Of a stretch of DNA of 64,000 bases, positions 1,264 through 56,793 are shown one piece after another. Numbering within the stretch: the first letter of the stretch is position 1; the number at the start of each line of letters is the position of its first letter. Source of the stretch: Octopus sinensis (lineage: Eukaryota). A program made the translations under genes and the position numbers. The notes beneath the pieces are model-generated. The model saw only the letters and a program-made list of their open reading frames with translations. It was not told where the DNA came from and did not search any database. The stretch spans positions 23,064,001 to 23,128,000 of the forward strand of contig NC_043020.1 in the NCBI RefSeq assembly GCF_006345805.1, read 5' to 3'.

Positions 1264-1564
1264 CACGTGATCACCGTAACCGACCACGCTATCAGATGTT
1301 GCTACACATCACTAGTCACACTGCGCTTCGCATTGTTTTAGCCTTCAAATGACGCCACCCGCTGGCTAAGCGAGCAGGCCAACAGAAGAAAGAGTGTGAG
1401 AAAGTTGTGGCGAAAGAGTACAGCAGGGATCGCCCCCCCCCTGCCGGAGCTTCGTGGAGGTTTAGGTGTTTTCGCTCAATAAACACTCACAACGTCCGAT
1501 CTGGGAATCGAAACCGTGATCCTACCACCGCGGGTCCGCTGTCCCACTGGACCATTGTGCCTCG
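1263..1564 (-). mobile_element. tRNA-derived SINE, family C, full length
   Basis: Reverse complement starts with a tRNA-like head (A-box-like segment, B-box GTTTCGATTCCC); homologous to 56794..57025 (+) and 24585..24710 (-). Confidence 0.85.
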
Positions 1565-1582
1565 ACACACACACACGCACAC

Positions 1583-1644
<62 letters not shown>

Positions 1645-1653
1645 AAATTCATG

Positions 1654-1715
<62 letters not shown>

Positions 1716-2408
1716 CAGATACATAGATAAACAGATATATATATATATAGAAATATAAATATAGATACATAGATACAATCATACACACATACACACACAC
1801 ACACGCAAACACATATATATATACACATACACATATACACGCGTGCATTCACACACACGTGTGTGTATGATTGTATCTATCCGTCTCTCTCTATATGTAT
1901 GTATATATCTATGTACGTGTGTGTATAGGTGTGTGTGGTGTGTGTGTCTGTGTGTCTGAATTCATACGCAGCACACAGATGCAGGTAGCTTCAGGGTAAT
2001 TGCATCGAATTCTTTTGAAAACGTTTGAAGGAAATAACAACGCGCAAGATCAAAATGCAACAACAGACGGTCTTGATTAGAACAGTTATAGAAACGGAAT
2101 TGCAAAACGACAAGCAATATGATTGGCTGTTGAAATGCCTCTATGATATGACACACACACACGCAGGCCCGATCATACAATGGCATAAATACACATATAT
2201 ATATTCATATTAAGATTTGTGTGTATCAGTATGAATATAAATAGATATAATCTACAATGTTGTGGTAATATTTCTTTGTGTAGAATTTTGGTAATGTATT
2301 CACTAATATAAAAATAGTTCCAAATTTCGGAGAAATTGTACGTAATTGTATAAAAAATAATATATATTGGCAAGGAATAGAAAAGATTCTTAATATTAAA
2401 TTTATGTC

Positions 2409-3065
2409 AAAGGCGGAAAGCAGGCAGAATGGTTAGCTCGTAGGGCAAAATGCTGAAACAGCATTTCGTCTGACTTTATGTTCTGAGTTCAAATTCCGCC
2501 GAGGACGACTCTACTTTTCATCCTTTCGGGGTTGATGAAATAAGTACCAGTTGCGTACTGGGTTCGATCTAATCGAATGGCCCCCTCCCCACCAAAACTT
2601 TCGGGCCATGTGCGTGGAGTAGAAAAGAATATTTTAAGGCAGCGAGCTGGCAGAAACGTTAGCACGCCGGGCGAAATGCTTAGCGGTATTTCGTCTGCCG
2701 CTACGTTCTGAGTTCAAATTCCGCCGAGGTCGACTTTGCCTTTCATCCTTTCAGGGTTGATTAAATAAGTACCAGTTACGCACTGGGGTCGATATAATCG
2801 ACTTAATCCGTTTGTCTGTCCTTGTTTGTCCCCTCTGTGTTTAGCCCCTTGTGGGTAGTAAAGAAATAGGTATTTCGCTCGGTTGCTAGGTTCTGAGTTC
2901 ATATTCCGCCAATAAATTCAGTACCGGGGCCAATAAATTCAGTACCAGTTGAGTACTGAGGTCGATCTAATCGACTGGCCCTCTCCCCCCAAAATTTCGC
3001 GCCTTGTGCCTAGAGTAGAAAAGATTATTAAAGGCGGCGAGCTGGCAGGATCGTTAGCACGCCTG
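2409..3065 (+). mobile_element. Cluster of tRNA-derived SINE-A: old-tail monomer, head-body-Tx1 tail-body-old tail composite, and a head fragment
   Basis: Head GGCGAGCTGGCAGAAACGTTAG with B-box GAGTTCAAATTCC; central GTCGACTTTGCCTTTCATCCTTTCGGGG...AAGTACCAG; two distinct 3' tails; junction AAAGAAATA-GGTATTTCG at about 2869. Confidence 0.9.
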
Positions 3066-3932
3066 CACATTGAATAAACGATTGATTAATGGTTAATGGT
3101 TAGATATTTAACAAATTGGCTAACGATGAAGAAGTGATATTGAACCCGTGCATGTGCTTATGATTATTATTGGCGTAATGACCGTCCCAAGACTCAGTAA
3201 TATATATGTGTGTGTGTGTGTGAGTATTTATACATGCATATATCTGTATGTAGCTTTCCACATATCTACACATACAGTAAACACACACACACACACACAC
3301 ACATACACACACATACAAATACACGCACACACAAAGGCAGGTAGGTCACTTACCGGTCTGTATAAACGCTGGCGTCACCACAATTTATGTAAAAAAAAAT
3401 GCCGGAAGCTACAGTAAACACCACAACATTCCCTTTTTCCTCCTTCCTGAAATTTACCCTAGAATTCAGCGGCATTTCATCGTCTGCAAAAATTTTCGAC
3501 GTCGTCTGCTGAAAACAAACCACGTTTTTTTGACATATTTTTGATCTGCTGCTTCCTCCATTCTCGTTGCATCGCAAATAACTTCATCATAAACTCTTGC
3601 CTTTTATTTACATTCCCATAGACCGTTTTCTTTCCAATATTAAGATCTATAAACAACCCTGTTCTTACAAAAACATATATCTTCATTGTTTCGTACATAC
3701 ATTATTTATATCTATCTTGATCTTCCGTTATAAGTTAAGAGTATATGTTTCTGTTTTCTATTTTCATGATAATGGTAAAAACCTTCCTTTTGGCAGGTGA
3801 TTATTTAATAAAAAAGGAAGAAAAAACTATATTTCTAAATTTTTTGCTACAAAACACTGTGGAGGATCATTTTCCTAGGCTGTTTATTTGTTTTCCAGAA
3901 AATGTCAAATCCATGAATGAAAGCATGTTTCA

Positions 3933-5497: not shown

Positions 5498-5667
5498 AGG
5501 CGTAGGAGTGGCTGTGTGGTAAAGTAGCTTGCTTACCAACCACATGGTTCCGGGTTCAGTCCCACTGCGTGGCAGCACCTTGGGCAACTATCTTCTACTA
5601 TAGCCTCGGGTCGACCAAAGCCTTGTGAGTGGATTTGGTAGACGGAAACTGAAAGAAGCCCGTCGTA
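5498..5667 (+). mobile_element. tRNA-derived SINE-B, 5' half, followed by its internal (TA/TG)n tract
   Basis: A-box GTGGCTGTGTGG, B-box GGTTCAGTCCC, then CORE-like CACCTTGGGCAA(G/C)T and GAAAGAAGCCCGTCG. Confidence 0.85.
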
Positions 5668-5673
5668 TGTATG

Positions 5674-5772
<99 letters not shown>

Positions 5773-6511
5773 TATATATATGTGTATGTATATATATATG
5801 TATGTGTATATATATATATTATGTATGTGTATATATATATGTATGTATGTATATATATATGTTTATATATATGTATATATGCGTTTGTGAGTATGCAAGT
5901 ATGTGTATTTGAGTGTGAATGTGTGTGTCTGTGTGCTCATGAGTGTGTGTGTGAATGCGTGCATATATACGTCAATACTCAGACGCATATATACATTCGT
6001 ACGCACATACATACATACTTTACATACATGCACACAAGGTCACACACATTACAGCGAAAGGAAAAGCTTGGATGTTGTTACCGCCAGAGAATATAAGGCA
6101 TACATACAATATATATCGATGGGAATGCGCACGCACACGCAAACACACAGATTGATACACACACACACACATACTCACATACATGCACATATGCACATAT
6201 GCAGTTGTTTTTCTACAGCGTTACCCACGCAAAGGATCACTTCAGATTATAAATACATAAATACACACACATACACATACAAACACAGAAACGCACACAC
6301 ACACAAATACACACACACATATTCATATAGATTGCTGCATAAACACTCTAAATATTAACTTCGCCATTAGTAGCTGTCCAGAAAGGTCATCACGTTTTAC
6401 TATATCGGAGATATGATATGGATTATGGAAAGTAATCCGTAAGAAGGATAATCCTTTAGGAAACGAATATTAGAAGTTAACCTGATGTGGAGGGCTCAAT
6501 CACAGCGAACG

Positions 6512-8789: not shown

Positions 8790-9460
8790 GCGGATCGATT
8801 TGTTCCACTAAATCATTTAATGAGGAACTCTACCCCACCACCCCACGCTACTCTACACACACACTAGAACTGACCACTTCTCAACAACCACACCCAAACA
8901 CATACCTTCAATCGCGTCACCATACGTTATAGATGCATACACACATGCACACACTCACACACGTCAGAGTCACTAGCTCCTATTCACACAAGCACACATT
9001 TAGAGATCCACACCCCATTCTCACATATACATACACGTACGCGCCCCTTCATTTGGGATCACCAGCACTTTATTATCTCCCTTTCTTTCAAACTTTTTTC
9101 TAATCATTCACCATGTTTGACCTATAAATCTACAATTTTTTTCATTCTCTCTCTCTTTCTCTCTCTGTCTATTTTTTCTTATTCCTTTCTGTTGAAGAGC
9201 ATAGGCTCGAAATGTAAAAGACCTTTTCATTTTCCCGTGTGTCAAACTCATACACCTGCTTGTTGTTCATACACCTGTCTTCGCCTTCTGTTTTTCTATA
9301 AGTTCCAACTATATATTATACGCTCACATGATCACACCTGTTTTACCCTGCCTTAACTTCTTACTCTTTGGACTTGCATATCTTCATCTACATACCAGCA
9401 TCCACCCGGATTACCCCTGGATATACTGATTCTAGTTTCACGGATTTCACTGGATTTTTC

Positions 9461-9470
<10 letters not shown>
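8790..9470 (+). mobile_element. Probable Penelope-like 3' region with hammerhead-like motif (core CTGTTGA) at 9185..9220
   Basis: CTTT-CTGTTGA-A-GAGC-atag-GCTC-GAAAT-GTA-AAAG; downstream sequence resembles the 4106..4306 repeat; flanked by (GA)n and (TA)n. Confidence 0.5.
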
Positions 9471-9537
<67 letters not shown>

Positions 9538-9562
9538 GTATATATATATATGTATGTATGTT

Positions 9563-9606
<44 letters not shown>

Positions 9607-9644
9607 TATAGATATTGTATATAAATGCATATCTTTTATATAAA

Positions 9645-10190: not shown

Positions 10191-10449
10191 ACTCACACAC
10201 ACACATACACACACGTTTATTCACGATAAATGCAAACGAACCAAAGTTTGCTTTAGAAGCGCCGAAATGTGGTCTTCGCGATACAAATGAGATAATAATT
10301 TATTTTCAAACGCATAAACGCTGATAGTACAGTTGAGATAGGATAAAATATCCATACAAAGCGGATATATACATACATACATACATACATACATACATAC
10401 ATACATACATACATACATACATACATACATACATACATACATACATACA

Positions 10450-10485
<36 letters not shown>

Positions 10486-10520
10486 CATACATACATATAT
10501 ATATATATTATATATATATA

Positions 10521-10558
<38 letters not shown>

Positions 10559-10569
10559 TATATATATTT

Positions 10570-10832
10570 ATATAAAATAACATGTTACAATTATTCAATA
10601 GTCAAGATAAAACTCTGAGTTTCGGATGCCGAAGTGGAAATCCACAACACCATCTCTTCGGTTATCTGGCCATATAACCGAAGAGATGGTGTTATGGATT
10701 TCCACTTCGGCATCAGAAACTTAGTGTTATCTTGACTATTGAGTAATTGTAACATATTATTTTATAGATAAATTTCCTCTATTTACATAATATTGAGGTC
10801 TCTTTCTTTCTTTTGTTATCTTACAGTTTTTA

Positions 10833-10838
<6 letters not shown>
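10570..10838. mobile_element. PLE terminal-repeat insertion with inverted partial copy (about 95-bp-arm hairpin) in (TA)n; hammerhead-like motif 10605..10667 (-)
   Basis: Arms about 10573..10667 and 10675..10765 are near-perfect inverted repeats; minus arm reads AGATAA-CCGAAGA-GATG..CATC-C-GAAAC-TCAGA-GTT-TTATCT; same family at 57112..57390. Confidence 0.7.
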
Positions 10839-10884
<46 letters not shown>

Positions 10885-10888
<4 letters not shown>

Positions 10889-11226
10889 GATTGAACAAAA
10901 TGATGGAAAAACCTAGCATCATAGCCTCATAATTTTGAAATATCTATAAAACTGTCAAAAGCTTGTTTATTTTACTGTTTTTTCATTTATTATTAGTGTT
11001 GCTTAATATGTTTTGATAAAATTGCTGTTTCTTTTCAGATATCATAAAAGAAAGTTAATTAAAATTCTTTAAAATGACAGATCTATCGGACTTTCAAAGA
11101 GGTTAAATAGTTGGAGCGCGTGTGGCAGGCGCTAGCGTAACGAAAACAGCCGAAATGTTTGGTGTATCAAGAAGTACTGTCTCGAAAGTAATCACACCCT
11201 TTAAGAAAGAGGGAAAAACCTCCTCA
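10885..11226 (+). mobile_element. Tc1-like transposon 5' end (terminus plus HTH N-terminus), truncated by an RTE insertion
   Basis: Begins TA|CAG after (TA)n; from 11074 MTDLSDFQRG*IVGARVAGASVTKTAEMFGVSRSTVSKV, a Tc1 paired-like HTH. Confidence 0.85.
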
Positions 11227-12165: not shown

Positions 12166-12404
12166 AGATACTTCTTAAAAAAATCTACTCTAATTCCATT
12201 TAGGGCTCTCAAGTTTTTGACAAGATACTAAATAGCCGTAAGTCTTTGAACCCTAAGACAGTGCAGTACCTGGTCCTTACTTTTATCAGGATGAATGGGA
12301 ATTTTAGAACTGTGAAGTGGCATTCTGTTAGGGAGTTGGTATAACTATACATGCGAAAGCTTGGTTCCAGCTCTCTTAGAAGTTCAATATGTATATCACC
12401 GCAT

Positions 12405-12636
12405 ATTTCTATTTCTTTATTTCAAGGGGCTAAACACAGAGAGGACAAACAAGGACAGACAAACAGATTAAGTCGATTATATCGACCCCAGTGCGTAACT
12501 GGTACTTATTTAATCGACCTGGAAAGGATGAAAGGCAAAGTCGACCTCGGCGGAATTTGAACCCAGAACGTAACGACAGACGAAATACGGCTACGCATTT
12601 CGCCCGGTGTGCTAACGTTTCTCCACCTCGCCGCGC
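12405..12636 (-). mobile_element. SINE-A monomer with Tx1-like tail
   Basis: Head, B-box, central domain and tail ...TGTGTTTAGCCCCTTG-AAATAAAGAAAT. Confidence 0.88.
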
Positions 12637-13320
12637 TTACCCGGATTTATATATGTAATAGATGACACTTTGTCAGACGCGTCCTGCAGCGGGATTATAC
12701 CCAGAAGCGAATTTCTTAATCGTTTAACTGCGCCTTCACGTGTGTAATCATTATTTTATCGTTTTCCTATCATGATAACATTCAAACAAGCAACGCATTG
12801 CAGTATATCTGGTTAATTTTGATTTTCCGTAGAAACGACTCTGAAAATTATATTTACAAGCAAGGAGACGTACATCATATATATATTCATGTATTCCGAT
12901 ATTCACAATTTCATGCTCGTTACTGCAAACGTATTTGCTGTGTTGAACCGCAGCAGCGCATAATTTACAGAGAAAATTATTTAACAAGTCCTATAAAAAT
13001 AAATATTAACAGAACTATCATTTGAAAGGCAGACACGAACGTTAAAGGCATAGATAACAGATTACGAGTTTATGGTTTCTCTGTCTCTAACGAGTTCTCT
13101 TCGCTATCATTGATAGTTAGGATATAACACGATTTAAAATATATCGTTTCCTCAATTCATAAATTTATACATGCCGTATCATTGTAAATATATGTGCTAT
13201 GCTGAAGTTACAGTTCTGTATAGAAATGTGCTGGCATCTTACGCTTCCTAGAATATGTATATGTAAAATTTAAAGAAGGGGTAAATGGGTCCTTCGTCAG
13301 TTTCGTAGATGAATATTGTA

Positions 13321-13440: not shown

Positions 13441-13738
13441 TATCTTAAAGGCAAAGCCGACTTCGGCGGAATTTGAACTCAGAACGTAACGGCAGACAAA
13501 ATATCTATTTCTTTACTACCCACACGGGGCTAAGCACAGAGAGGACAAACAAGGACAGACAAACGGATTAAGTCGATTACATCGACCCCAGTGCGTAACT
13601 GGTACTTAATTTATCGACCCCGAAAGGATGAAAGGCAAAGTCAACCTCGACGGAATTTGAACCCAGAACGTAGCGGCAGACAAAATACCTCTAAGCATTT
13701 CGCCCGGTGTGCTAACATTTCTGCCAGCTCGCCGCCTT
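13441..13738 (-). mobile_element. SINE-A composite: head-body-Tx1 tail followed by a partial second body
   Basis: Junction AAAGAAATA-GATATTTTGTCTGCCG at about 13505. Confidence 0.88.
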
Positions 13739-16738: not shown

Positions 16739-16804
<66 letters not shown>

Positions 16805-16849
16805 TTAATAATAATAATACTAATAATGATGATGATGATGATGATGATG

Positions 16850-16899
<50 letters not shown>
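16697..16899. repeat. (AAT)n/(GAT)n microsatellite flanking the 3' end of Tx1 element 1
   Basis: Direct inspection; gives poly-I ORFs. Confidence 0.97.
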
Positions 16900-17179
16900 C
16901 AATTCTTTTTTATTGGCCACAAGGGCTGACACGCATGATTAAATAAAGGGACAAGACAGGGCGAAAGGTTACAAAGGGTTTTGTCCGTTTGTTAAAAAAT
17001 CCGTGTAAAAAACTTTAAAGCAATGATTATTAAAACAATGAAAAACTCCCAAAAGGGGGAGACGTCTCGAAAGGTTCCTGGTGGAAAAAACCCTACAAAA
17101 GCCAACGGGAGCCTGGTCAAAAAAAGGGGGTGTAGAGAGTCCCCTTTCTTCTCCTTTTACATTACCTTTTTCTTTGAAA

Positions 17180-20100
17180 TCACAGGCGAAACCTGAGAAC
17201 TGGTCCATTTATACAGGCCAGTCTCGCACAATTCACCCACCTTTCATAAAACTTGCTATCGGACAGCACTTTCCTCTCTAACCTCATCTTCCTTTTCAAG
17301 TGAAACTTGAAAAAGTTGATGAGGCCTTGACCAAAGAGGAAAGTGTCTGACTTTAGCCCTTTCAAACGAGTCCACCACACGACTTCTTTCCCCACAGCCA
17401 CAAGGCACAAGAAAACGGCCTCGCCCTCCTTGTTAAAGGAGGTCGGCGGGGCAATCTTCACTATGGATTCGGCCGATAGTCGGATCCGTCCTACACGTGA
17501 CAGTAGCTGTTCGACATAAACCCATATTTCAGCAATACTCGGGCACTGGACGAGTGCGTGCAGAACGGTTTCGTAGTCCTGGCAACACCTCGAGCAGGCC
17601 CGTCTGACGGCACTTCCGTGCCGGTAGAGTTTATCTCGAACAGGCAGAGCCCCTCGGTAGCACTGCCAGGCGAGAGACCTCTGGAAATTATCCATCGGCC
17701 CTGGCCCGAAAGTCCTCCCGAACAGACCGCTCAGTTCGTCGTCTTCAACGCCTAGAGTTTCCCCGAGAACGTCGTCGCATTTTTCCTCCACTAACCCTCT
17801 ATAGAACGCTAGAGTGGAGCTGTAACCGACCGCATTGCCCGCCTGGTGGAGGGCGGAGAGGGCTTGACGGCACTCGAGGTGCCAAGCGCCCTTTCTCGGT
17901 CTACGTTTGATCCAGGTCTGCAGCTCCGTCAAAGAGACGAGCTGCGGAAAATCGCGTCTGACAAAAGACGACCACACCTGTTCACCGTCTAGGAAGCGCT
18001 TGAGATGCCGCAGCCTGAGCGCATGTCTGCGCAACAGCAACCACGGCATTCCAAGGCCTCCGTTCAGCGGTCGTTGACAGCAGATGGATCGCCTGACCAG
18101 TGGCACCTGACCCTTCCACAAAAAGTCGAAGAGCAGGCGTACCAGCTTGGCCAACCAGCGGTCGGGACAAGGGACGACGGTCAAGCGGTAATAGATGACG
18201 GATGCGATGTACGCATTCGCCACCTCCGCTCGACCTTTCAGGGACAGCTTCCTCTCGGCCCATTTCTGGGTGAGACGTGCCACCCTGCTCGTCACCTCTT
18301 CCCAGTTCTTATCCACCTGGAGGTCCGGACCGAACCAGACCCCGAGCAGTTTAACGGGTCCGTCTGTCCAGCGCCCTACGACGCTGTTGGACGGCATGGG
18401 CTTGCCTCTCCAGGTGCCCAGTTGCAAGCCCACAGACTTTTCCGCGTTAATCTTTGCCCCTGTCACCGCTTCGTACTGGTTTAGCGTCTCGCCAATCAGG
18501 CCAATGTGCCTGTGGCTCGACACCACCACGGTGACGTCGTCGGCATAAGCAGACACGCTGTTTCCGCCTCCTAGATCGCGCGGGATGCCCCTCAAAGCCT
18601 CCAACTTGCGCAGTAATGGCTCGAGAGTCAAAATGTACAAGAGGGAGGAGAGAGGGCATCCTTGGCGGACCGAAAGCGAGATGTCGAACGGTTCTGAAAG
18701 GTGACCGTTCACCCGTATCACCGAGCAGATGTTGCTGTATAAAGCAGCGATCCACCCGCGGAAGACTGGACCGAAGCCGGCTGCCTCGAGGACAGCTGCC
18801 AGGTACCGATGGTCGACCCTATCGAAGGCTTTACTCTGATCCAAGTTGATCAAAGCCCCACCCGCGCCAGCGTCGTTACCCACCCTCTCTATGATGTAGC
18901 GCATGAGATGGAGGTTGTCGTGTATCGACCTGGTCGGCACGGCGCATGTCTGCGTCCCGCCAACCAGCTTGTCCACGACAAGCGCCAATCTCTTGGCTAG
19001 CACCTTGGCCAAAATCTTCAACTCTGCATTGAGCAGAGTGATGGGCCGGAAATTCCCTATAACGTCCCCCTTGTTTGGGTCCTTCTTTAGCAAAGCCACC
19101 ACCCCTCGACAAACAAAAGCAGGAATTCTCCCGTTTTGCTGCCAGTTGCAGTAGACGTTTGCCAACAGGTCCGCAAACAAGTCTGGCATTGAAAAGTAAA
19201 GCTCGTAGGGCAGACCATCCAAACCCGGCGATCTACCTCTCGTGCAACTCTTCATCGCTTCCTGTACTTCCCAGGCAGATATCGGTCCTTCGCAGCACTC
19301 TCGCGCTGTCCGAGAGTTGCGGCAGTCCGTCCAGGTACACACCGAAGTCTGTACCGTTGGTGTCCGTTCCACCGCTCGTCCCAAACAGTTGAGCAAAGCG
19401 CCGCTGAATCACCGTACACATCTGCTTCGGTTGGGTAACCTCGCGCCCGTTCTGGTCCACCAAAGACCGAATGGTTGCTCTGTTGCCTCGCTTCGCCTCC
19501 GCCACGCGGGCCCATCGAGCGGCTCTAGTCCCCTCCCCGCTTAGCGAACGTGCCTTAGCTCTGACAACGCAGCCTTCGTGTTTGGCGTCGAAGTGTTGGT
19601 CGAGGGCCAACCTTGCCGCCAACACGTCGGTCGCGATGCCAGTGTCAAGAGCCTCGTCTAGTTTCTTAACTAAATCCCGCTCTCTCTTCCTACGTTCAAT
19701 AGCTAGAGTCTTACTATACCTAATCGACTCTACTCTAATTGCTCTCTTGAGGGCAAACCACCAGTTGTTGTTGATGATTGCCCCCGTGAGCGCCCGCTTA
19801 ACTAGTAAACTAATCCGGTCTCTGTAGGCTTTGCACGCCGTTAACGACGCGTTCAGCTTCCAGTAGCCGGGTCCCTGTCTATGTAGCCTATCTAAGTCGA
19901 CCGTACAGATCACTAATTTGTGGTCCGTATATTCGACTAGGTGGAATTGTGGACACCCTACGCTGTCCTTATCCGCTGGCCTACAAAACACTCTATCTAA
20001 GTACGATCTAGACGACCCGATGCGGTTTGTCCAAGTCCACATTGGCACATTCGGGTTGTCTAGTCGAAACCTGTCGGACAGCTGAAAGCGGCCGAGTAGG

Positions 20101-20612
20101 TTGGCGAGGCTCTTGCACCCTCCCCCTCTCCTATCAGACGCTCCCCTGCCCACCCGATCGAAACGTTCGTCTAAGACAGCGTTCCAATCCCCAACTAGTA
20201 CTAGAGTGCGTGACGTTCCCAGGAAAACTTCCAGACGTTTGAAATAATCCGACTGCCCTGCTCCTGTCGGAGCGTAGGCAGCCAGCAGTCTGAAAGCACC
20301 GCCGTCACTACCGTCGACGTCGAGGACCACCAACTTACCTTCCGGATCCAAGAAGACTGTCCTTATTTTCAGGTCCAGGCCCTTCCGAAACAACACCGCA
20401 GTACCACCACCGCCCGCTCCCGGCCGACACGGAGATAGAAATATCTCGTATCCGCCGAAAAGGGCTGCGAGTTCCTGCGGGTCGGAGAGCCTGGTTTCAC
20501 TGATGGCTGCTACATCCACATCATGAAACCTCAGGTCGTTTAACAGGTGACCCTGTTTCCAAGGTGACCCGAGGCCTCTCACATTCAAACAACCGATTCT
20601 AAGATTTGCCAT
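17180..20612 (-). CDS. Tx1 ORF2: apurinic-like endonuclease + reverse transcriptase + C-terminal CCHC; one frameshift near 19310
   Basis: MANLRIGCLNVRGL...ISET...GDWNAV...SYLDR...TDHK (APE); SPGLDGLP, FRPITLLN, LDQSKAFDRVDH, VRQGCPLS, YADD (RT); CSRCCQDYETVLHALVQC. Confidence 0.93.
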
Positions 20613-20650
20613 GTTTCAAAAGTTAGGGGAAAAAAAGGAGAAAAAAGGCT

Positions 20651-22502
20651 CTACTTACTGTTGTTGGTGGTGGGGGTGGTTCCCTTGTGCTTTTGCACGG
20701 GTGCTTCAATAATATTTTTGTAAAGTTTCTGAGAGAAACTTTTCCCTAACGATCCCACATCGTTAGGGAATATTTGTTTTATTTCGTTGTAAACTGTTTT
20801 GTTTATTTTTATTGTGAGAATGTGTGCTGGTGGTGTGTTGTGTGTAGGTATTATGAAATCTGTAATGTTTGTGCTTGTTTTGTTTTTCAAATACTCAACC
20901 AGTTCCTGGTTTCTTGTATTCACTGCTGTAATCGTGTCTGTAATTGTGTCTGTGTTTGTTTGTGTCTGTGGTAGTGGCAGTAGTGGTGTCGAAAGTGTTG
21001 TTTTGTTGTTTTGTTTGTTGTTGTGAGTGTGTGTTGTTGTTGATGTTGTTGTTGATGTTGGGAAGTACTGTTTGTTCGTGCTTCCCCTGTAAATCTTTTT
21101 GTTTTTTCCTCTTTTCTTTTTTGGAGGTACTATGTTCCATTCTCCTTTGTTGGAATCAGAGCTCGCACAATCCGAGATCTCTTCATCCGGCAAAGAATGG
21201 TTGAGGGGTCTGCTTCAGTAGCAGGACGAAAAGTTTTTGGTTCCGCCGGTATCGGTGGTGCCGCTGCTCCTGTTACTGTTGATGTCGCTGCTGTCGACCT
21301 TCGAGGTACTGGTGTCGGTGTGGTTTGTGGTGGTTGTTGTGTGTTGGAGGTGGTGTTGTTCGTCTTGATGCTGGTGTTGGTGATGGTGTTGGTGGTGTGG
21401 CAGCCTTTGGTGTTTCTTGCTGTTTTTGTTGTTTCTGTTGTTGTTGCTTGTGTTGTTGTTGTTGTTGTTGTTGTTGTTGCTGCTGCCTCTTGCTGAAAGC
21501 CTCCATCCTCTTTTTGTGAATGGGACAGTCCCTCTTTAAGTGGCTTTCGCTGCTGCAGAGAAAACATTTTGGCTTTCGCCCCTCCACAGCAACGTTTAGC
21601 CTGGTGCCGTCCGGCAAACTTACGAAATCAGGGATTTTACTTATATTCTCTTGCTGAATTTGCGCAAGAAGCAGCACTCCCATCCCCAACCAGTTTTTCG
21701 CCCTCACTCTCCTGACATCTAGAATGGTGGTAGTGTCCTCTATATCATAGAGGACAGCTGCCACCAGCCATGACATATTTAGCTCAGGGGGGACGAGGTC
21801 GATTTTTATTTTTGTTACTCTTCGCCCGAGGTGGGTCGGAATTAGTAACAAATTCTCAGTTTGCAAGGGCGAAATGGCGTTCGCCCTTGCAAGCTCCTCT
21901 GTTGGGAAGCGAACCTCCACGGTTCCAAAACGCTTCCCCTTGGTTACGTAGCTCTTTTGGGCCCAAATGGGCTTTAGAGCTATCTCCAACTGTTGGGGTG
22001 TGGCATTTGTTATTCTTTTTAGTTTTCTGTCGAAAACTTTGTAAATTATTGTTTGCTTGTTGGTGCTTTCAATCACCTCTTGTGGAGTATTGAGGAAGAT
22101 ACCATTGCCATCCTTCCTTAACAATTCCTTCGCTCTTTTCACATCTTCTAGAGTTATCTTAACTTCCTCCGAAATTTGCTTCGCAGCAGAAGCAAAATTG
22201 TTGGAAGTTTTTTCTTTTATCTCCGTGTCAATGTTTGTGATGATTTTTGTATTTGTTTTTTTTTCCTCCTCCTTCCGTACCAAAGCATTAGGTGAAGGCA
22301 GAGGGGGAAAATCGAGAATTACGTCGAACGCGACGTCCTGGCTTGCATTCTCCTTTTGAACGGAGCTCGTGCTCTGCGGTTCGGAAGGAGAATCTTTGTT
22401 GCCTTTTAAGGCGTGAAGTGGGTGTTTTGTACGAGTTGTGTGTGTTTGCGGAGGGAGTGTATCTTGAAGGAAGGAACAGCCAACTGTTCGCTTCATAGCC
22501 AT
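20651..22502 (-). CDS. Tx1 ORF1 (nucleic-acid chaperone, CCHC zinc knuckle, low-complexity Q/T/P C-terminus); split over three frames
   Basis: ATG at 22502 (MAMKRTVG); GKRFGTVEVRF; VEGRKPKCFLCSSESHLKRDC; continues via ORFs 21130..21567 and 20651..21193. Confidence 0.82.
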
Positions 22503-22734
22503 GTTTTTTTTTGTTGTAATATTCAAAATGTTGAAAAATGTCAAATGTTCAAAATTTTCAAACGCAATTTCACCCCGAATGGGGCAAAATTTCGCCCAAC
22601 CGACGAGCTCCGCAAGAAGCCGGTCGGTTTGGCTACAAAAATATTAAAAAATATTCAAACCTAACAATAGATTTCCAATGAAATTGGTGTCAAATTCACG
22701 GAGCTGATTCACGTACGTCCATCGGCGTCGGAAG

Positions 22735-22735
<1 letters not shown>

Positions 22736-22812
<77 letters not shown>

Positions 22813-22830: not shown

Positions 22831-23659
22831 TAAGAAGAATGAAAATAAAAACAAAAGTCTGTGTTTTTAATGGCAGCAATAATCCTGTCACAATACAAGA
22901 TCAAATCAGTGGACAAAGATGTGTGTGTGTGAGTGTGTGCGTGCGTGTGCGTATGTGTGTGTGTAAGCATCTCTCTCTCTCGTGTATAATATATATATAT
23001 ATATATATATATAAATATATCATAAATGTATGTATATATATATAAGTGTACATATATATCTATGCATATATACACGCATACATATATATCTACACAAACA
23101 CAAACACACACACACACATATGTATATATACGTGTGTATTTCTGTTTAGGTGATTGTATGCTCGTGTGTGTGGGTGTATATATAAGCGAAGTAGACGATG
23201 AGTTTTAGGAGCGTAAACAGAATGCTAGCAGACAGGCTTTGTTGTAAAGCAATGAAAATTCTTAATTACGTGTAAAGAACACGTAGCAATCAGTTGATTG
23301 TTTTCGCAGTATAGCTTCAAACGGTCTATACACACACATACATGCATACATACATACACACACACAAGTATATGTATATAATGTTTACAAATATACATGT
23401 ATATATATGCATATATATATACATATATATATATATGTATATATATATATATTATATATATATATATATAATTATATATATATATATACAACAAATATAC
23501 ATACATAGACATACATATACATATATATATACACATATATATCTAGATATATATGTATATATATTGATTATATGTAAGGCTTCTTTATAGATATACATAT
23601 AATATATTTATACATGCATGTATATATTTTATGAGATATATTATAAATATATATCTTTA

Positions 23660-23714
<55 letters not shown>

Positions 23715-24129
23715 ATATATAATATATATATATATATTATATATATACGTATATATATATATGTTATATATATATATATATACACGCACATATACATATA
23801 TATTGTATATATTTACATATATAAGCAATATATTGATGGTGATAGAAAGCGATTGTACATATAATGGCTTATTTGCGGTGTTTATAAGACCGACCTCAAA
23901 CTATTATTTGTAAAATCGTTGTTGTTCCGCTTCGTTTCATCTCTGATCAATATGTCGTTCAGCCATAACCATCTTTTTGGGGGAGGTTTTTGATTTAGAA
24001 ACCAATTCACCTGCTATTTCTAGCAAGTCGAGCGACCATTCGTGCTGCATTTTCTTGTAGAGAACAGAGTAGGCGTTTGTATAGTAGCCTGAAGGATACT
24101 TATTATGATCTATGAAAGAGCATAGTTGC

Positions 24130-24584: not shown

Positions 24585-24776
24585 ACATCGCCGCTCACAC
24601 TGCGCTTCGCATTGTTTTAGCCTTCAAATGACGCTACCCCGCTGGATAAGGAAGCAGGCCAACATAAGAAAGAGCGAGAGAAAGTTGTGGCGAAAGAGTA
24701 CAGCAGGGATCGGCAGACGAAATACCGCTAAGCATTTCGCCCGGCGTGCTGACGATTCTGCCAGCTCGCCGCCTTG
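24585..24776 (-). mobile_element. Chimera: SINE-A head joined to SINE-C body
   Basis: Minus: GGCGGCGAGCTGGCAGAATCG...GGTATTTCGTCTGC|CG|ATCCCTGCTGTACTCTTTCGCCAC... Confidence 0.8.
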
Positions 24777-26007: not shown

Positions 26008-26405
26008 TTACTTCATATTTCTTTATTGCTCAGAAGGGGTGAAAGAAGGACAGTCAAAGGGATTAAGTCGATTGCATCGACCCCAGTGAGATGTAATCCG
26101 AAAGCATGAAGGTAAAGTCGACCTCGGCAGAATTTGAACTCAGAACGTAGCGGCAGACGAAATACCTTTTTCTATTTCTTTACCACCCACAAGGGGCTAA
26201 AGACAGAGAGGACAAACAAGGACAGACAAATGGATTAAGTCGATTATATCGACCCCAGTGCGTAACTGGTACTTATTTAATCGACCTCGAAAGGATGAAA
26301 GGCAAAGTCGACCTCGGCGGAATTTGAATTCAGAACGTAACGGCAGACGAAATACCGCGAAGCATTTCTCCCGGCGTGCTAACGTCTCTGCCAGCTCGCC
26401 GCCTT
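26008..26405 (-). mobile_element. SINE-A dimer (both units with Tx1-like tail)
   Basis: Junction AAAGAAATAGAAAAA-GGTATTTCGTCTGCCG at about 26166. Confidence 0.88.
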
Positions 26406-29550: not shown

Positions 29551-30780
29551 GAAAAAAGCACATCCACGTCTGCTCATAACAGTAAAGTGTTTGAATATAG
29601 ATTTGTTTGTGCAGAGCAATCGATAACTTGCGACTATTTATGTGGTAGTGATAGACGATAACACACATATGGGATTTTAAGATGGATTTATCGAATTCTT
29701 ACAAAGAGAGACACATCTTGTGAGACAGTAGAGGACGTTTGGAGTCACGGATAGCAGTAGTCGAAGAAGGTCGTGATAGTACATAGCTTTTAACCTCCCC
29801 TTTCGTAAAAATCATATCTCCGAAACTCAAAGGGGAGCAGGAGTGGCTGTGTGATAAGAAGCTTTCTTCCCAACCACATGGTTCCGGGTTCAGTCCCACT
29901 GCGTGGTACCTTGGGTATCCTACATGTCGTTAAATACGGTAAATATGGGCGTTACTGATTAAATCTATGCTTGAGAGAGAAAACGAGAAAAGTTATCTGT
30001 CTTGATAGGCGTAAGTCAGTTTGGCAACCAAATTCAGAAAGAACAGAATACGTATGAAGAGAAGTGTACAGTAAAGAAAGGATTCAGAGCGGGAGGAAAA
30101 GGGAAGGAACAAAAGGAGATTGAGAGCGAGCTAGAGAGGTATAGACATACGTATAGGAAGAAAGGAGTTCCGTAGCAGCCATTTTGTTAGGCAGATTTCG
30201 ACTGCGAATCATTCCGTGCGTACCTACATCTGATGAGTGGGAACCATTAATAATATAAACTTTACATGAAACTCCGATTCATGGGAATCGTTTGCTATTG
30301 CGATCGCCATTGCAGTAGATTATACACCGTCACTATACAGTCGATTACTTACTGGGTTTTGACTAACTCACATACAGACACACATACACATATATGTACG
30401 TGTGTGTATGTGTGTTTGTGCGTGTATTTGAAAAAAAAAATTGCAAAAATTTGTAGTGTAATTTTCTTAAGTCCAAAATTATTAATTATATAAATAAACT
30501 CTTTAAACAATAACATAGCACCACACGAACTTTTTGTAAGTAAGTTTTTTTAGAAATGTGTTGATGCATAATCTCTGTTGCAGTTCTTGTTAAAGTAAAA
30601 TTTCACCCCTCCCCATATGCATATATATGTGTGTGTGAATGTCTATATCTATGTACGTATATATGTATGAATGTATCTATCTATCTATGTATATATATGC
30701 ATTTATATACATATATGTATATGTGCATATATATACATAAATAGATATATGCATATATATATACATATATCTATATGTAT

Positions 30781-30813
<33 letters not shown>

Positions 30814-31054
30814 GCATATATAAACATATATATATATATATGCATAGAAATACATATATATATATATATATATGCATATATAACATATATATATATATAT
30901 ATATGCATATATAACATATATATATATGCATATATAACATATATATATATGCATATATAACATATATATATACATATATATAATATATATATATATATGT
31001 ATATATATATCTACATATATGCATATATCTATTTAACTATCCCCCCTCTCTCTC

Positions 31055-31096
<42 letters not shown>

Positions 31097-31208
31097 CGCA
31101 TACATATCCTTATGTATATATCTATGAGTTTGTGCGTGTGTATGCATGAGTGTGCGAACTTGTGCTTGAATATACACGGACCTAGCGTTATACATGTAAC
31201 ATGTGTGT

Positions 31209-32413: not shown

Positions 32414-32808
32414 GAAGGCGGCGAGCTGGCAGAGACGTTAGCACGCCGGGCGAAATGCGTAGCCGTATTTCATCTGCCGTCAAGTTCTGAGTTCAAATTC
32501 CGCCGAGGTCGACTTTGCCCTTCATCCTTTTGGGGTCGAGAAATTAAGTACCAGTTACGCACTGGGGGTCGATGTAATCGACTTAATCCGTTTAATCGCT
32601 TGTTCTCTCTGTGTTTAGCCCCTTGTGAGTAGTAAAGAAATATGTATTTCGTCTGTCTTTACGTTCTGAGTTCAAATTCCACTGAGGTCGACTTTGCCGT
32701 TCATCCTTTCGGGGTCGATAAATTAAGTACCTGTGAAACACTGGGGTCGCTGTTATTGACTAGTCCCCTCCCCACAAATTTCAGGCCTTGTGCTTTTAGT
32801 GGAAAGGG

Positions 32809-32812
<4 letters not shown>
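32414..32812 (+). mobile_element. SINE-A composite: head-body-Tx1 tail-duplicated target-body-old tail
   Basis: Junction AAAGAAATA-TGTATTTCGTCTGTC at about 32643; second unit ends CCCCTCCCCACAAATTTCAGGCCTTGTGC. Confidence 0.9.
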
Positions 32813-32849: not shown

Positions 32850-33403
32850 GAGTGAGAGAGCAGTTCATGCCATCAAAGTGACACAGGGGTAAAATATACG
32901 AAGCCCAATATACCCATCATGACTACCCGTCTGATAAAGGTACACCAGGCACATGCATCACAACCATATGTGCGCGACATGGTGATCTCATATCAAGATA
33001 AACAGCATATGACCTTGCAGGTGGGGCCCAGTTAGAATTTTCTTCAGGTTGAGTAGCCCATCCCGCTCAAAAGGTCCCTGAATAAGGATTGTTTAAGGAT
33101 GTTGAAAGAACCACCTGTGTTTCCAGAGGTGAATTATTCAAACCCCAAAGAATCCCTCTCAACACATGGCTATGATGCTCCCCCACTACTTCTGCTCGTG
33201 ATCAGAGATGCACATATCGTCAGCCACTAAGGGACATGCTCAACTGGTTAAGGTCAAACAACTGACAAGCAAATCTGTGGTATTGAGCAGAATATTTGCT
33301 GTAGCCCATCTTTTATACCAAGACAAAACAATGTACATGATAACACTTCCAATCAATTAAGATCAGAAGCCATGAGAGCCACTGCCTGGTACTGCATCAG
33401 GGC

Positions 33404-33405
<2 letters not shown>
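32850..33405. repeat. Unclassified 555-bp insert between two (ATT)n tracts, probably an interspersed repeat
   Basis: Complex sequence flanked by (ATT)n on both sides; only one copy in the window, no ORF or TIR recognised. Confidence 0.4.
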
Positions 33406-33436: not shown

Positions 33437-33437
<1 letters not shown>

Positions 33438-34085
33438 GGCGGTGAGCTGGCAGAAATGTTAGCACGCCGAGCGAAATGCGTAGCCGTATTTCGTCCACCG
33501 TTCCGTTCTGAGTTCAAATTCCGCCGAGGCCGACTTTGCCTTTCATCCTTTCGGGGTCGATAAATTAAGTACCAGTTACACACTGGGGTCGATATAATCG
33601 ACTTAATCCCTTTGTTTGTCCTTGTTTGTTCCCTCTGTGTTTAGCCCCTTGTGAATAGTAAAGAAATAGGTATTTCGTCTGTCTTTGCGTTCTGTGTATA
33701 AATCCCGCCAAGGTAGACTTTACCTTTCTTCCTATGGAGCTGGATAAAATTAGTTGAGCACTGGAGGGGGAAGGGGGCACCAGGGGTGTGTGCGATGACA
33801 TTAACTAACCCTTTCTCCTAAAATTTCAGGCCCTATGCCTATAGCAGAAAGGAATATGACATACCTGAAGGCTGCGAGGTGGTGGAATCGATAGCGTACC
33901 GGATGAAAATGCTAATCGGCATTTCTTTCAGCTTTACGTTCTGCGTTCAGATTCCACCCTTTCATCCTCTTGTGGCCGATAAAGTTAGTACCAGTTGTAT
34001 ATTAGTGTCGATGTAATCAATTAGTTTCCTTCCCACAAATTTCAAGCTTTGTGCTTATAGTAGAAAGAAAGAAAGAAAGAAAAAA
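33437..34085 (+). mobile_element. SINE-A composite (33437..33858) followed by an older old-tail monomer (33868..34085)
   Basis: Junction AAAGAAATA-GGTATTTCGTCTGTC at about 33669. Confidence 0.87.
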
Positions 34086-39681: not shown

Positions 39682-40050
39682 ACTGGGAGAATCGTTAGCA
39701 CGCCGGGCGAAATGCTTAGCGGTATTTTCGTCTGCCGCTACGTTCTGAGTTCAAATTCCGCCGAAGTCGACTTTGCCTTTCATCCTTTCGGGACCGATTA
39801 AATAAGTACCAGTTACGCACTGGGGTCGATATAATCGACTTAATCCGTTTGTTTATTCTTGTTTGTCCTCTCTGTGTTTAGCCCCTTGTGGATAGTAAAG
39901 AAATAGAAATAGGTATTTCGTCTGCTGCTACGTTCCGAGTTCAAATCGACCCCAGTTACGCACTGGGGTCGATGCAATCGGCTTACTCCCTTTGTCTGAC
40001 CTTGTCTGTTCCCTCTATGTTTAGCCCCTTGTGGGCAATAAAGAAATAAG
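39682..40050 (+). mobile_element. SINE-A dimer (second unit internally deleted)
   Basis: Junction AAAGAAATAGAAATA-GGTATTTCGTCTGCTG at about 39912. Confidence 0.88.
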
Positions 40051-41487: not shown

Positions 41488-42012
41488 TTTTTTTACTTGT
41501 TTCAGTGATCTGACTGCGACCATGCTGGGGCACTGACTTGAAGTATTTTTAGTCGAGTGAATCGATCGCAGTATTTATTATTTTACTGTAAAGCCCGGTG
41601 ACTTTGCTTTTCATCCTTTCGGGGTCGATTAAATAAGTACCAGTTACGCACTGGGGTCGATATAATCGACTGAATCCGTTTGCCTGTCCTTGTTTGTCCT
41701 CTCTGTGTTTAACCCCTGGTGGATAGTAAAGAAATAGGTATTTTAGATCGAACTTAAACACATCAAAAGCGGTTGTTAAGCGGTGGCAGGGGCGGAGGAG
41801 AAACAGAGACACAAAGACGCACGCATAGATATATACTTATATACGCAAGAAGCTTCTTTCAGTTTCTGTCTACCTAATCCACTCACAAGGCTTTTGTCAG
41901 CTCGAGGCTATAGTAGAAGATACTTGCCCAAGGTGCCACGCAGTGTGACTGAACCAGGAACCATGTGGTTGAAAAGCAAGCTTCTTACCACACAGCTACG
42001 CCTTCGCCTATA
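41488..42012 (-). mobile_element. SINE-B containing a plus-strand SINE-A body+Tx1 tail (41597..41745)
   Basis: SINE-B blocks on both sides; insert ends AAAGAAATA-GGTATTTT. Confidence 0.8.
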
Positions 42013-43324: not shown

Positions 43325-43702
43325 CGATTAAATATTTTTCTTTACTACCCACAAGGGGCTAAACACAGAGGGGACAAACAAGGAAAGACACACGGATTAA
43401 GTCGATTACATCGACCACAGTGCGTAACTGGTACTTAATTTATCGACCCCGAAAGGATGAAAGGCAAAGTCGACCTCGGCGGAATTTGAAATCGGAACGT
43501 AACGACGGGTGAAATACCTATTTCTTTACTACCCACAAGGGGCTAAACACAGAGGGGACAAACAAAGACAGACACACGGATTAAGTCGATTACATCGACT
43601 CCAGTACGTCACTGGTACTTAATTTATCGACCCCGAAAGGATGAAAGGCAAAGTCGACCTCGGCGGAATTTGAACTCGGAACTTAACGACAGACGAAATA
43701 CG
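43325..43702 (-). mobile_element. Two SINE-A body+Tx1-tail units: downstream part of the SINE disrupted by Tx1 element 2
   Basis: Begins with the TSD copy, then B-box, central domain, tail, junction AAAGAAATA-GGTATTTCACCCGTCG (about 43518), second unit. Confidence 0.9.
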
Positions 43703-43945
43703 AATTTCTTTATTGCCCACCGGGGGCCAAACATAGATATGGACAGTACAACTGATAGGATCAGTGAATCGATATGATTTTACATAAATGTGACATCAAA
43801 AATAAAATACAATACATAAAAATCGAATGGAATACACAGTACAAAGACAATACAAATGAAGCGATGATCAAGTTACGCTCCGATCCCACAAGCCCCGATC
43901 TACCGCTGATACCTTTTTATTTTTCCTTTTTTTTTTTTTCCTCGT

Positions 43946-46900: not shown

Positions 46901-47353
46901 TGTGTGTGCTGCACATATTGTATTAGAGTCTCCTAACACTACTAGTGAATGCGACGTGGCTAGGAACTTTCCTAGGCCACGAAAATATTCAGTTTGCGGG
47001 CCAATAATGTTTGGTGCGTAAATAGCGACCAGCCTGATTGTCTTGCCACAACTGAATGTCAAGTCGAGAACGACCAGCCTGCCTTCTGGGTCAGAAAAAA
47101 CCAACTTTTTCTCGGCTACCCGGTTTCTTTTTAGTAGGACCAACACCCCACCCCCACCTCCCGCCCGACTCGGAGAAACGTATTTCTCGTAGCCGTTCAG
47201 GAGGGGGAGCAGATCTCTTGGCCTCTTCACCCGGGTTTCCGTTGCAACAATTACATCCAAATTTCTCGACCTGATGTCATTCAGAAAGCGTCCTTGCTTC
47301 CAGCTTGACAGCAGGCCATGAACATTTAAACAACCAATGTGAATAGCCATCAC
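43946..47353 (-). pseudogene. Tx1 element 2 ORF2 (APE-RT-CCHC), several frameshifts/stops
   Basis: IHIGCLNVHGL...ATET...TYLDR...SDHK; SPGLDGLP; LDQSKAFDRVDH; VRQGCPLSP; FADD; CPRCGGDRETVPHAIVQC across ORFs 45803..47353, 45465..45767, 45166..45489, 44809..45153, 43946..45013. Confidence 0.92.
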
Positions 47354-47361
47354 TTACCTGT

Positions 47362-48887
47362 TTAATTAGGATTGTCCGGTGGAGGGGGACCCTCCACCTT
47401 TTTTTGATCCTGGGTCGGAGGTGGACGGTCTTGGGAAATAGATTTGTCAAAATCCCGTCTCACCACCGACACAGAATTATCAGGTGGAGGGGGAATCTCC
47501 ACCTTTTCCTTTTCTCGCGGGTTCGGAGCTGGTAATCCATGAAATATCGACTTGTTAAAATCTAATCTCAATGAAGATACAGTCTTTCTGTACTTATTTT
47601 GTAGAATTCTATAAGTCTTATTTGAGACTTCATATATGTCGTAATTGATAAATTCCTCTGAAAGGTTATCAATTTTTTTACAGTCTTTATGAGTTGAATG
47701 TCTCTCATGAGCTCAGTATCTTTAGTGTATACGGCTATTATGCCTTTTTCTTCTTTTTCTCTTCTGGCAGTCTTTTTTGGTCGTTGTTCTGTAGTAGTCG
47801 CCGCTCTCGGCTGGGTTGCTGGTTGTATTTTTCTTTTGTTTGTTGTTTTTTTTTCTCATCTGTTTCTTCTTTATCTTCTTCCTCTTTGTCTTTTTCTCCT
47901 CTTCCTCCTCTTCTTCATTTTCCTTGCAGTTCCTTCGAATGTGGCCTAATTGACCACATAAAAAACATCGAGGTTTTCGGCCCTCAACAAACACCACGAG
48001 GTTCTCCTCCCCTACCTCAATTGTCTCAGGAATTGTTTGAATTATTTTAGGGTCCGCTTGAATGAGAAGATTAATTGTTTGACCATCCCAGCGTGGGTTT
48101 TCCGTAGCGGTAGCCTGGAGGAGAGTAATTTTTTCTACCTCTTTGATTAGGACTGCCGCCAACAACCACATAGGTTAGACCTCTGGCGGGACCCTTGTAA
48201 TTTTTATTCGCGACGTCCTCATCCCCATATAATAGGGTATTAACTCCACGTCGTTCGTTTTCAACGTTTCAACTGAGTTCTTGTGTGCTATTTATTGGTG
48301 AACCTTACTTCCACCGTTCCGAATTTTTTTCCTCTTCTCAGAAATACTACGTCGCCCAATATTGGCTTTAAGCACTTTTCTATTTTCTCTTCTGACATTC
48401 TTTCAATTTTTCTTTTTTGTAGACAATATGTTTTGAAAATTATTGTTTTTTGCTTTTCTTCCTGTAATAACTTTTGCGGAGGTTCAATTTTCACACCGTT
48501 GTCAGTTATTTCCATCATTTTGCTGTATTTCATAATTTCGCTTTTATTCGTCGACAGTATCTGGGTTCCACCCCCAGCAGCCAACGCAAAACTTTTTTTT
48601 CCATTTTTTGGTTCTATCTGGATGCTAGGCACATCAATTATTCTCTTCGACACAATGCCTTTGTTCTCTGGCAAAGTCGGAAACTCTTCTGGTGAAAGTT
48701 CTGACGAGCTCTCAGACACATCTCCAAAAATATCAAATATATTATCCTCTCTGCTATTCCTTCTTGTAGCGGGGGAAACCCCTATTTCCTTGTCTGTAGT
48801 TGGCTCCTCGCCGGACATGTATTTCCTCCTCTCAACAGGAGAAACAAGTATTTCTGCTCCAACGGTAGGCTCCATGCTAGACGACAT
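47362..48887 (-). pseudogene. Tx1 element 2 ORF1, frameshifted
   Basis: RGKKFGTVEVRF and VEGRKPRCFLCGQLGHIRRNC (CCHC), homologous to element-1 ORF1; likely ATG at 48887. Confidence 0.82.
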
Positions 48888-49052
48888 TCTTCCCCCCCAA
48901 AGGGGGAATGAACAACGCGTGCTACCACAAGCACTAAGTGTTTTCAATTGAAAACTCCAACAGTTAAGTTATTCAACAGTTTAACAAGAAACAACAGTTG
49001 TTAACAATATTAACACCACGAAACAGCAATTCTTACTTCACGAACACATGTG

Positions 49053-54442: not shown

Positions 54443-54466
54443 GTATAATATATATATATATATGTA

Positions 54467-54497
<31 letters not shown>

Positions 54498-54512
54498 GTT
54501 TATATATATATA

Positions 54513-54596
<84 letters not shown>

Positions 54597-56705: not shown

Positions 56706-56793
<88 letters not shown>

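Follow-up and report, generated by a model that had tools for sequence, protein, structure and literature searches.

An octopus SINE and a LINE share a preferred junction inside the SINE head, in arrays that may form by insertion of the SINE into its own copies

SINE-A, LINE2 and their common junction

A window of 64 kb from Octopus sinensis (GCF_006345805.1, NC_043020.1:23,064,001-23,128,000), the sole source of the array evidence given here, was analysed for a short interspersed element (SINE) of about 233 bp, SINE-A. Approximately 25 copies or fragments of it were found by BLAST, using two copies against the window. The element starts with the head AAGGCGGCGAGCTGGCAGAAACGTTAGCACGCC... and, as the initial annotation of this DNA had reported, two different 3' ends are present: an old tail (...CCCCTCCCC..AAATTTCAGGCCTTGTGCCTAGAGTAGAAAAGAATATT), often continuing into (ATT)n, and a young one (...TGTTTAGCCCCTTGTGGG(T/C)A(G/A)TAAAGAAATA), described there as Tx1-like and called LINE2-type below. 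A B-box-like motif (GAGTTCAAATTCC) and A-box-like motifs, upstream of base 50, can be read in the sequence. In the SINE-A head, ARAGORN found no tRNA, and no Rfam match was obtained at E <= 5.

Two long interspersed elements (LINEs) lie in the same window. Pfam recognised Exo_endo_phos, RVT_1 and zf-RVT in LINE1, and Exo_endo_phos and zf-RVT in LINE2, which is broken. In the reverse transcriptase (RT) region the two are 66% identical at the DNA level and 54-64% at the protein level, and the best solved relative of the LINE1 RT is human L1 ORF2p (E = 5e-39). The predicted domains of LINE2, an apurinic/apyrimidinic endonuclease (APE), an RT and zf-RVT, establish its membership at the level of the L1 superfamily; the label 'Tx1' is no firmer than 'Tx1-like'. 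Protein searches returned LINE1-family relatives only (short contigs, Argonauta hians) and no relative of the LINE2 family, and the names of the matches were uninformative; the best protein relatives include Argonauta hians (67% identity) and cuttlefish. At its 3' end (...GGCCCCCGGTGGGCAATAAAGAAAT), LINE2 aligns with the young SINE-A tail over the last 50-75 nt or so, and is near-identical to it over the last 30 or so (local alignment). Because this end is shared, the LINE2 family appears to be the partner of SINE-A.

Young-type tails were located by pattern search, and the sequence 3' of each was then aligned to the SINE-A consensus. Sixteen such tails are present, 15 in SINEs and one in LINE2. 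Half of them, seven from SINE-A plus that of LINE2, abut head base 50-52 (…GCTTAGC|GGTATTTCGTCTG…), all in the orientation of the host and after 0-6 nt of slipped repeat. The other eight are followed by head base 23 or thereabouts (one tail, at 55394), by GGTATTTT and then unrelated DNA (one tail, at 41737), or directly by unrelated DNA (six tails). The seven SINE junctions listed in the initial annotation are thus all in place, the tail ...GTGGGTAGTAAAGAAATA being followed by (G)GTATTT(C/T)G..., although the copy of the head segment found at 2869 has decayed by now (GGTATTTCGCTCGG). Three of these arrays (2869, 32643 and 33669) terminate in the old tail (...CCCCTCCCC..AAATTTCAGGCCTTGTGC...), again as annotated, and the remaining ones have a LINE2-type tail at their end (26166, 39912, 43518) or are cut off (13505). 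An eighth SINE tail-to-head junction, at 55394/55395, lies elsewhere in the head (approximately base 18-23).

The window contains 18 occurrences of the target motif, where 0.8 would be expected. With 18 target motifs in 128 kb, both strands counted, the probability that 8 of 16 tails fall at that nucleotide and on that strand is about 2e-27, and the probability that seven of the eight SINE-to-SINE junctions fall within one 3-nt window, as they do, is about 5e-13. Chance is excluded for the junction pattern, which is real and non-random.

The insertion of LINE2 points to the same nucleotide. The initial annotation had placed the start of its target site duplication there, and indeed a perfect 16-bp duplication, CGTATTTCGTCTGTCG, begins at the base of the seven SINE junctions. 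The LINE2 tail (GGGCAATAAAGAAAT, ending at 43704) is followed by CGTATTTCGTCTGTCG TTAAG... and the rest of SINE-A, and the same 16 nt terminate a SINE-A head fragment (...GCCGTATTTCGTCTGTCG) at 49068-49053, just upstream of the 5' end of LINE2. This duplication is of the GTATTTCGTCTG type. From its position, it follows that the bottom-strand nick made by the machinery would lie before base 50-51 and that the top strand, in the case of the LINE, would be nicked after base 66. The target preference of LINE2 is common to the SINE, as 7 of the 15 SINE tails abut the base used by the LINE2 tail, in the same orientation. Three occupied old-type hosts carry GTATTTCG, against GCATTTC or GTATTCC in five unoccupied old-type copies (Fisher P = 0.018). 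A hairpin predicted here, GGCGAAAUGC/GGUAUUUCGUC, has the target in its 3' arm; its z score is weak (-1.9).

Ages and heads of the array units

Arrays were cut into upstream and downstream units, and divergence was scored separately for bases 1-49, 50-65 and 66-165 (Table 1); subfamily assignments are based on about a dozen SINE-A copies. Upstream units and stand-alone copies form a homogeneous set, mutually 88-97% identical in bases 67-165 and 2-8% from their own consensus. Compared with that consensus over bases 66-165, downstream units are 26% (A2), 13% (E2), 32% (F2), 13% (D2) and 17% (G2) diverged, and they are of three kinds, with the old tail in A, E and F, of a CAAT-tail subfamily in D and G, and of a beta subfamily in H. 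Mutual identity among A2, E2 and F2 is 57-68%, versus 89-92% among A1, E1 and F1, and at least five different unit combinations are present in 64 kb. Given this heterogeneity and greater age of the downstream units, a single dimeric master or local duplication cannot explain the whole set. A common subfamily and age of both units, which the initial annotation had taken as the sign of local tandem duplication, was not found in A, E and F; nor was a single ancestral dimer, since unit pairs differ among loci and a dimeric source is possible for D and G alone. The sequences therefore support several independent origins of the arrays.

Table 1. Coordinates of the SINE-A arrays, of single SINE-A copies and of LINE2 in the window
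Feature	Position	Strand	Description
A1	2636-2868	+	Complete young SINE-A (alpha subfamily), LINE2-type tail; mismatches to young consensus 1/49, 0/16, 3/100
A2	2869-3028	+	Old host remnant, head base 50 (GGTATTTCGCTCGG) to old tail; 26% diverged, bases 66-165
Array C	13447-13738	-	C1 13738-13506, complete; C2 13505-13447, head bases 50-108, then cut off
Array D	26016-26405	-	D1 26405-26167 (tail plus extra GAAAAA); D2 26166-26016 (CAAT-tail subfamily, internal deletions)
Array E	32415-32812	+	E1 32415-32642; E2 32643-32812 (old tail, then (ATT)n)
Array F	33437-33860	+	F1 33437-33668; F2 33669 to ~33860, strongly decayed, old tail
Array G	39683-40048	+	G1 39683-39911 (5'-truncated at ~base 13, extra GAAATA); G2 39912-40048 (CAAT tail, 52-nt deletion)
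Array H, units	43337-43702	-	H1 43702-43519 (starts with downstream copy of LINE2 duplication); H2 43518-43337
LINE2	43703-49052	-	5.35-kb L1/Tx1-type LINE; ORF1-like (open reading frame 1) frame, APE, disrupted RT, zf-RVT
Array H, host head fragment	49053-49111	-	Bases 8-66, ending CGTATTTCGTCTGTCG
Array I	55163-55606	+	Junction off the preferred site; I1 55163-55394; I2 starts at head base 18-23
SINE junctions	2868/2869, 13506/13505, 26167/26166, 32642/32643, 33668/33669, 39911/39912, 43519/43518	-, for 13506/13505, 26167/26166 and 43519/43518	Extra GAAAAA at 26167/26166; extra GAAATA at 39911/39912
SINE-A copy B	12409-12639	-	Stand-alone young monomer, reference
SINE-A copy J	56358-56589	-	Second stand-alone young monomer
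SINE-A copy L	41600-41745	+	5'-truncated; tail, then GGTATTTT, then unrelated DNA
Orphan SINE-A head	24711-24775	-	Stops exactly after base 66 (the LINE2 5' junction point)

Three arrays have kept duplications at their outer ends: D as a whole is flanked by TGAAGTA[G/A]CGA, G as a whole by an imperfect duplication of about 21 nt (2 mismatches) with the exact 16-nt core TGTGTATAAAATGATG, and H (head, LINE2, H1 and H2) by TATTTAATCG. The outer ends of these arrays would thus belong to one resident element, the remainder having arrived later or together with it. Inside, the head is not duplicated at the 5' junction in any of the seven arrays, for which homology would be needed, and on this point, joining of the 5' end by homology, the initial annotation agrees with the sequences. 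A host head retained up to base 66 and followed by a new full head was found in none of the seven arrays, upstream units starting at the normal 5' end of the SINE. No host head is present upstream of A1, which adjoins the tail of another element, of E1, which adjoins unique DNA, or of F1, which adjoins (ATT)n.

The origin of the upstream head itself was examined through its mismatches to the young consensus in bases 1-49, which number 1/49 in A1, 2/49 in E1 and 5/49 in F1, versus 11-14/49 in old-type heads. If the host head had been kept, with the host's own divergence, such values would be expected with P = 7e-6 (A), 4e-4 (F) and 0.04 (E). In the head of G1, an apparent excess of divergence (8/46) stems from the alignment, which took in 12 non-SINE bases. 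In A, F and, weakly, E, bases 1-49 of the upstream unit therefore match the young consensus and not the old host, which suggests that the newcomer brings a complete promoter, with A and B boxes, and that the host loses its first 49 bases, including the A-box region. The initial annotation had proposed a promoter rebuilt from the host A box and a new B box, and this part of its interpretation is not supported; its preferred insertion site, the several independent arrays and the homology-joined 5' end are.

Candidate mechanism, alternatives and related systems

These data are probably best read as target-primed reverse transcription that prefers one site in the SINE's own head and completes the 5' end through homology. 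SINE-A copies with a LINE2-type tail would be mobilised by the LINE2 family (L1/Tx1-type, with an APE endonuclease). As shown by the positions of the joints, the predicted endonuclease would favour one site between the putative A and B boxes of SINE-A, with a bottom-strand nick ...GCTTAGC / GGTATTTCG... and, for LINE2, a top-strand nick 16 nt downstream of it. Roughly half of the insertions seen in the window are at this preferred site, always in host orientation. Reverse transcription would be primed at the nick, which would explain why the tail stands directly before host base 50 or is separated from it by one slipped GAAATA or GAAAAA. For a template of LINE2 RNA, which has no upstream homology, the 5' end would join at the top-strand nick, giving the 16-bp duplication. 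For one of SINE-A RNA, the 3' end of the cDNA would be complementary to the host head and could anneal there, as proposed for R2. In second-strand synthesis, the top strand would then prime from the annealed point and copy the cDNA, and host bases 1-49 (up to 65) would be displaced and lost. Such an event is expected to leave a complete young SINE-A, set exactly in the frame of the old copy, and behind it a remnant of the host that runs from base 50 to the end and has lost its head and A box. Repeats of the process could yield trimers, and LINE2 itself could land in arrays.

Pairing of the RNA tail with the nicked strand was considered as the cause of site choice and rejected, as that strand ends in ...GAAATACC, of the same sense as GAAAUA and not complementary to it. 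Template switching of the RT between two SINE RNAs was rejected for the same reason.

Several points weigh against a self-targeted insertion that replaces the host head. The sample is a single 64-kb window with a single LINE2 copy. Site specificity is a preference, half of the tails lying at unrelated sites, and we infer the replacement of the host head from the type of sequence found in its place. Bases 50-65 match at 11-12 of 16 positions between units in A, E, F and H, i.e. they are not conserved, and in C, D and G they are consensus-like and barely informative. Arrays D and G have the same subfamily pair (downstream units 88-93% alike, upstream units 90-94%) and could be copies of one dimeric source. 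H1 and H2, which at 94% identity are the most similar unit pair in the window and have two private variants in common, could be a local duplication.

According to the initial annotation, insertion takes place at the same site but the host A box is kept; with the host head retained, new sequence would begin at about base 67 and a hybrid host/newcomer promoter would be formed. This would be the simplest outcome if the top-strand end of the host (bases 51-66) primed on the cDNA, and it is consistent with array C, where both target copies carry the variant TATTTTG, and with array D, where the two units agree throughout bases 50-65 and part from each other at base 67. Such an outcome is unlikely: in A, F and, weakly, E, not only bases 1-49 but also bases 50-65 are young-type over old hosts that are 13-32% diverged; within bases 50-65, E1 and F1 carry the young GCCG and their hosts GTCT. 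Alternatively, the arrays could have been formed once or a few times, and dimeric or trimeric source genes could then have been retrotransposed whole, the junction being inherited. The whole-array duplications at D, G and H fit this equally well, D and G share a pair made of an alpha unit and then a CAAT-tail unit, with similar divergence in both units, and, the young consensus having no T4 stop, RNA polymerase III could read through a dimer. Nevertheless, we regard inherited dimers as an improbable source of the set, given the number of unit combinations in 64 kb, the far greater mutual divergence of A2, E2 and F2 than of A1, E1 and F1, and the presence of LINE2 at the site with its own duplication; moreover, the same junction must still arise in each source. 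Alu-type dimers, which are fixed fusions amplified from a master, likewise consist of two SINE-related units head to tail, but in SINE-A the downstream unit differs in family and age between loci.

A 185-bp unit running from base 50 to the tail could instead have been duplicated locally in tandem or by unequal crossing-over, and H1 and H2, with their shared private variants, are the sole pair that fits this. For the arrays in general such an origin is very unlikely, as the units of A, E and F have different tails and very different ages, an identical breakpoint at unlinked loci is not expected, and the LINE2 duplication lies at the same base. It could also be that the downstream unit is the newcomer, truncated at base 50, for example through a cleaved RNA, and landed behind the tail of a resident. 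Landing beside tails does occur, old-tail units being often followed directly by another unit. This last possibility is hardly credible, since the downstream units are the older ones and have no duplications of their own, three of them have a different tail, implying another partner, and the LINE2 duplication places the cut in the head and not in the tail.

If insertion is indeed self-targeted and homology-resolved, SINE-A and LINE2 might, as a tentative extension, constitute a retrohoming-like animal system, in which the head serves as a landing pad and the promoter end of a resident, often older and with another tail, is overwritten by a new complete copy through cDNA-templated repair. We infer from sequence both the head replacement step and any 'drive' that would result from it. 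Array copies would then be the best sources, since the GGUAUUU... of their read-through transcripts can base-pair with the nicked strand of the target. More speculatively, read-through RNA from an array-resident copy would pair perfectly with the nicked strand, and one copy, L, is compatible with this: its GGTATTTT (41737-41745) is either a mimic of the target or 8 nt of read-through from an array-resident source, ending in a T4 run. In a retrohoming-like system, the tail and GGTATTTT of this copy would be the footprint of read-through RNA.

Site-specific LINEs usually reside in rRNA or snRNA genes, in microsatellites or in another transposon, and the fixed targets of the Tx1 clade are Tx1D (for Xenopus Tx1L), U2 genes and microsatellites. 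The closest precedent to SINE-A is given by crocodilian Tx1-Mar LINEs and SINEU SINEs, which share a site in Mariner-N4_AMi, with a 16-bp duplication and tandem SINEU-3 copies sandwiching the duplication (Kojima 2015, PMC4494074). In both cases an APE-type LINE uses one site in an abundant transposon, with a duplication of about 16 bp, and a partner SINE uses the same target and forms tandem copies. The novelty here is that the SINE is its own target: as its head is the site, the inserted RNA is homologous to the target, so that the 5' junction is seamless and host bases 1-49 would be replaced, whereas SINEU-3 gives two full copies around the duplication. Site preference also differs (about 50% for SINE-A in the window, versus 90% for SINEU-3) and, unlike in the SINEU-3 case, the tail of SINE-A is clearly shared with its LINE.

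For the 5' junction, the analogy is with R2 and R1, in which the 3' end of a cDNA complementary to DNA upstream of the nick can complete the junction by homology. As summarised in PMC6895275 (citing Fujimoto 2004 and Eickbush 2000), the RNA of R2 includes 28S sequence from upstream of the site, and it has been proposed that the cDNA anneals to this part of the target, giving the intermediate for second-strand synthesis. That upstream sequence derives from co-transcription with 28S rRNA, whereas in SINE-A it would be intrinsic (bases 1-49); the R2 endonuclease is restriction-like, whereas that of LINE2 is a predicted APE. Full-text searches of octopus repeat papers, with Repbase reports and subscription journals outside the search, returned no description of this behaviour. 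Collections of metagenomic, viral and prokaryotic sequences, queried with core patterns of SINE-A, yielded nothing or chance matches, and an exact look-up of the protein of one open reading frame of the window returned no match.

A SINE acting at once as passenger and landing pad of its LINE could reach very high copy numbers simply and safely. It would also be a natural case in which the 5' completion of target-primed reverse transcription, a poorly understood step, is forced onto homology. Self-targeting would explain the 'dimers' and truncated units met by annotators in octopus-type SINEs, and nested, head-replacing insertions would distort SINE age landscapes and subfamily counts. Were the retrohoming-like system real, one subfamily would spread through the conversion of related copies, host genes being little affected, and this might account in part for the very large number of SINEs in octopus genomes.

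Other repeats of the window

LINE1 (16910-22735, minus strand) has an APE, an RT and zf-RVT and is more intact than LINE2. It is bordered by (ATT)n on both sides (16744-16899 and 22736-22807), its 5' start near 22735 lying inside (ATT)n, and a relative on a metagenome contig (1990-2105) likewise ends in ...GGCCAATAAAAGAAATC(ATT)n. LINE1 therefore looks like a microsatellite-associated LINE. Kibi and Koshi are named as microsatellite-targeting families of the Tx1 clade in work cited by PMC4494074, and LINE1 resembles them by its flanks, which suggests that site-specific behaviour runs in this group of LINEs; unlike their target, that of the arrays is the SINE-A head, and LINE1 is not the partner of the arrays. 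Because the old SINE-A tail also runs into (ATT)n, the LINE1 family may be the partner of that tail.

In four places an old-tail SINE-A unit is followed directly by a complete SINE-A head (2632/2635, 3028/3029, ~33860/33866 and, on the minus strand, 42595/42536), forming a second type of head-to-tail array, in which the elements are joined at their ends; the full old-type unit beginning at 33866 lies beyond array F. Two 5'-truncated young copies, at 37624 and 41600, appear to share their start base (GACTTTGCC, approximately base 98), and the bases upstream of these truncation points may be decayed SINE sequence.

The orphan head of Table 1 continues, after an overlap of 2 nt, as the 3' portion of another, tRNA-like SINE, SINE-B, the joined sequence spanning 24595-24775 (-); 1316-1583 (-) and 56790-57075 (+) were noted with it. 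The join is that of a chimeric element or else the 5' junction of an insertion that entered this same site and was later lost, and the head may be another use of the LINE2 top-strand nick.

Between arrays E and F, a 556-bp segment (32850-33405), single-copy in the window, is enclosed by two (ATT)n tracts. Many TA- or TG-rich micro- and minisatellite tracts, mutually 72-83% identical, are dispersed in the window (5660-5880, 9460-9630, 10360-10890, 23390-23820, 30610-31130 and 54440-54670).

A 22-kb locus of Argonauta hians was uninformative for the junction, as the SINE head differs there. It contains, at 1470-3260 and 12250-12660, SINEs with a related body and tail (GGCCNTTGTGGCTAATAGAGAAATCTATT) and another head; LINE 3' ends at this locus carry the same motif as the SINE tail, and a larger SINE has a small one fused into its head.
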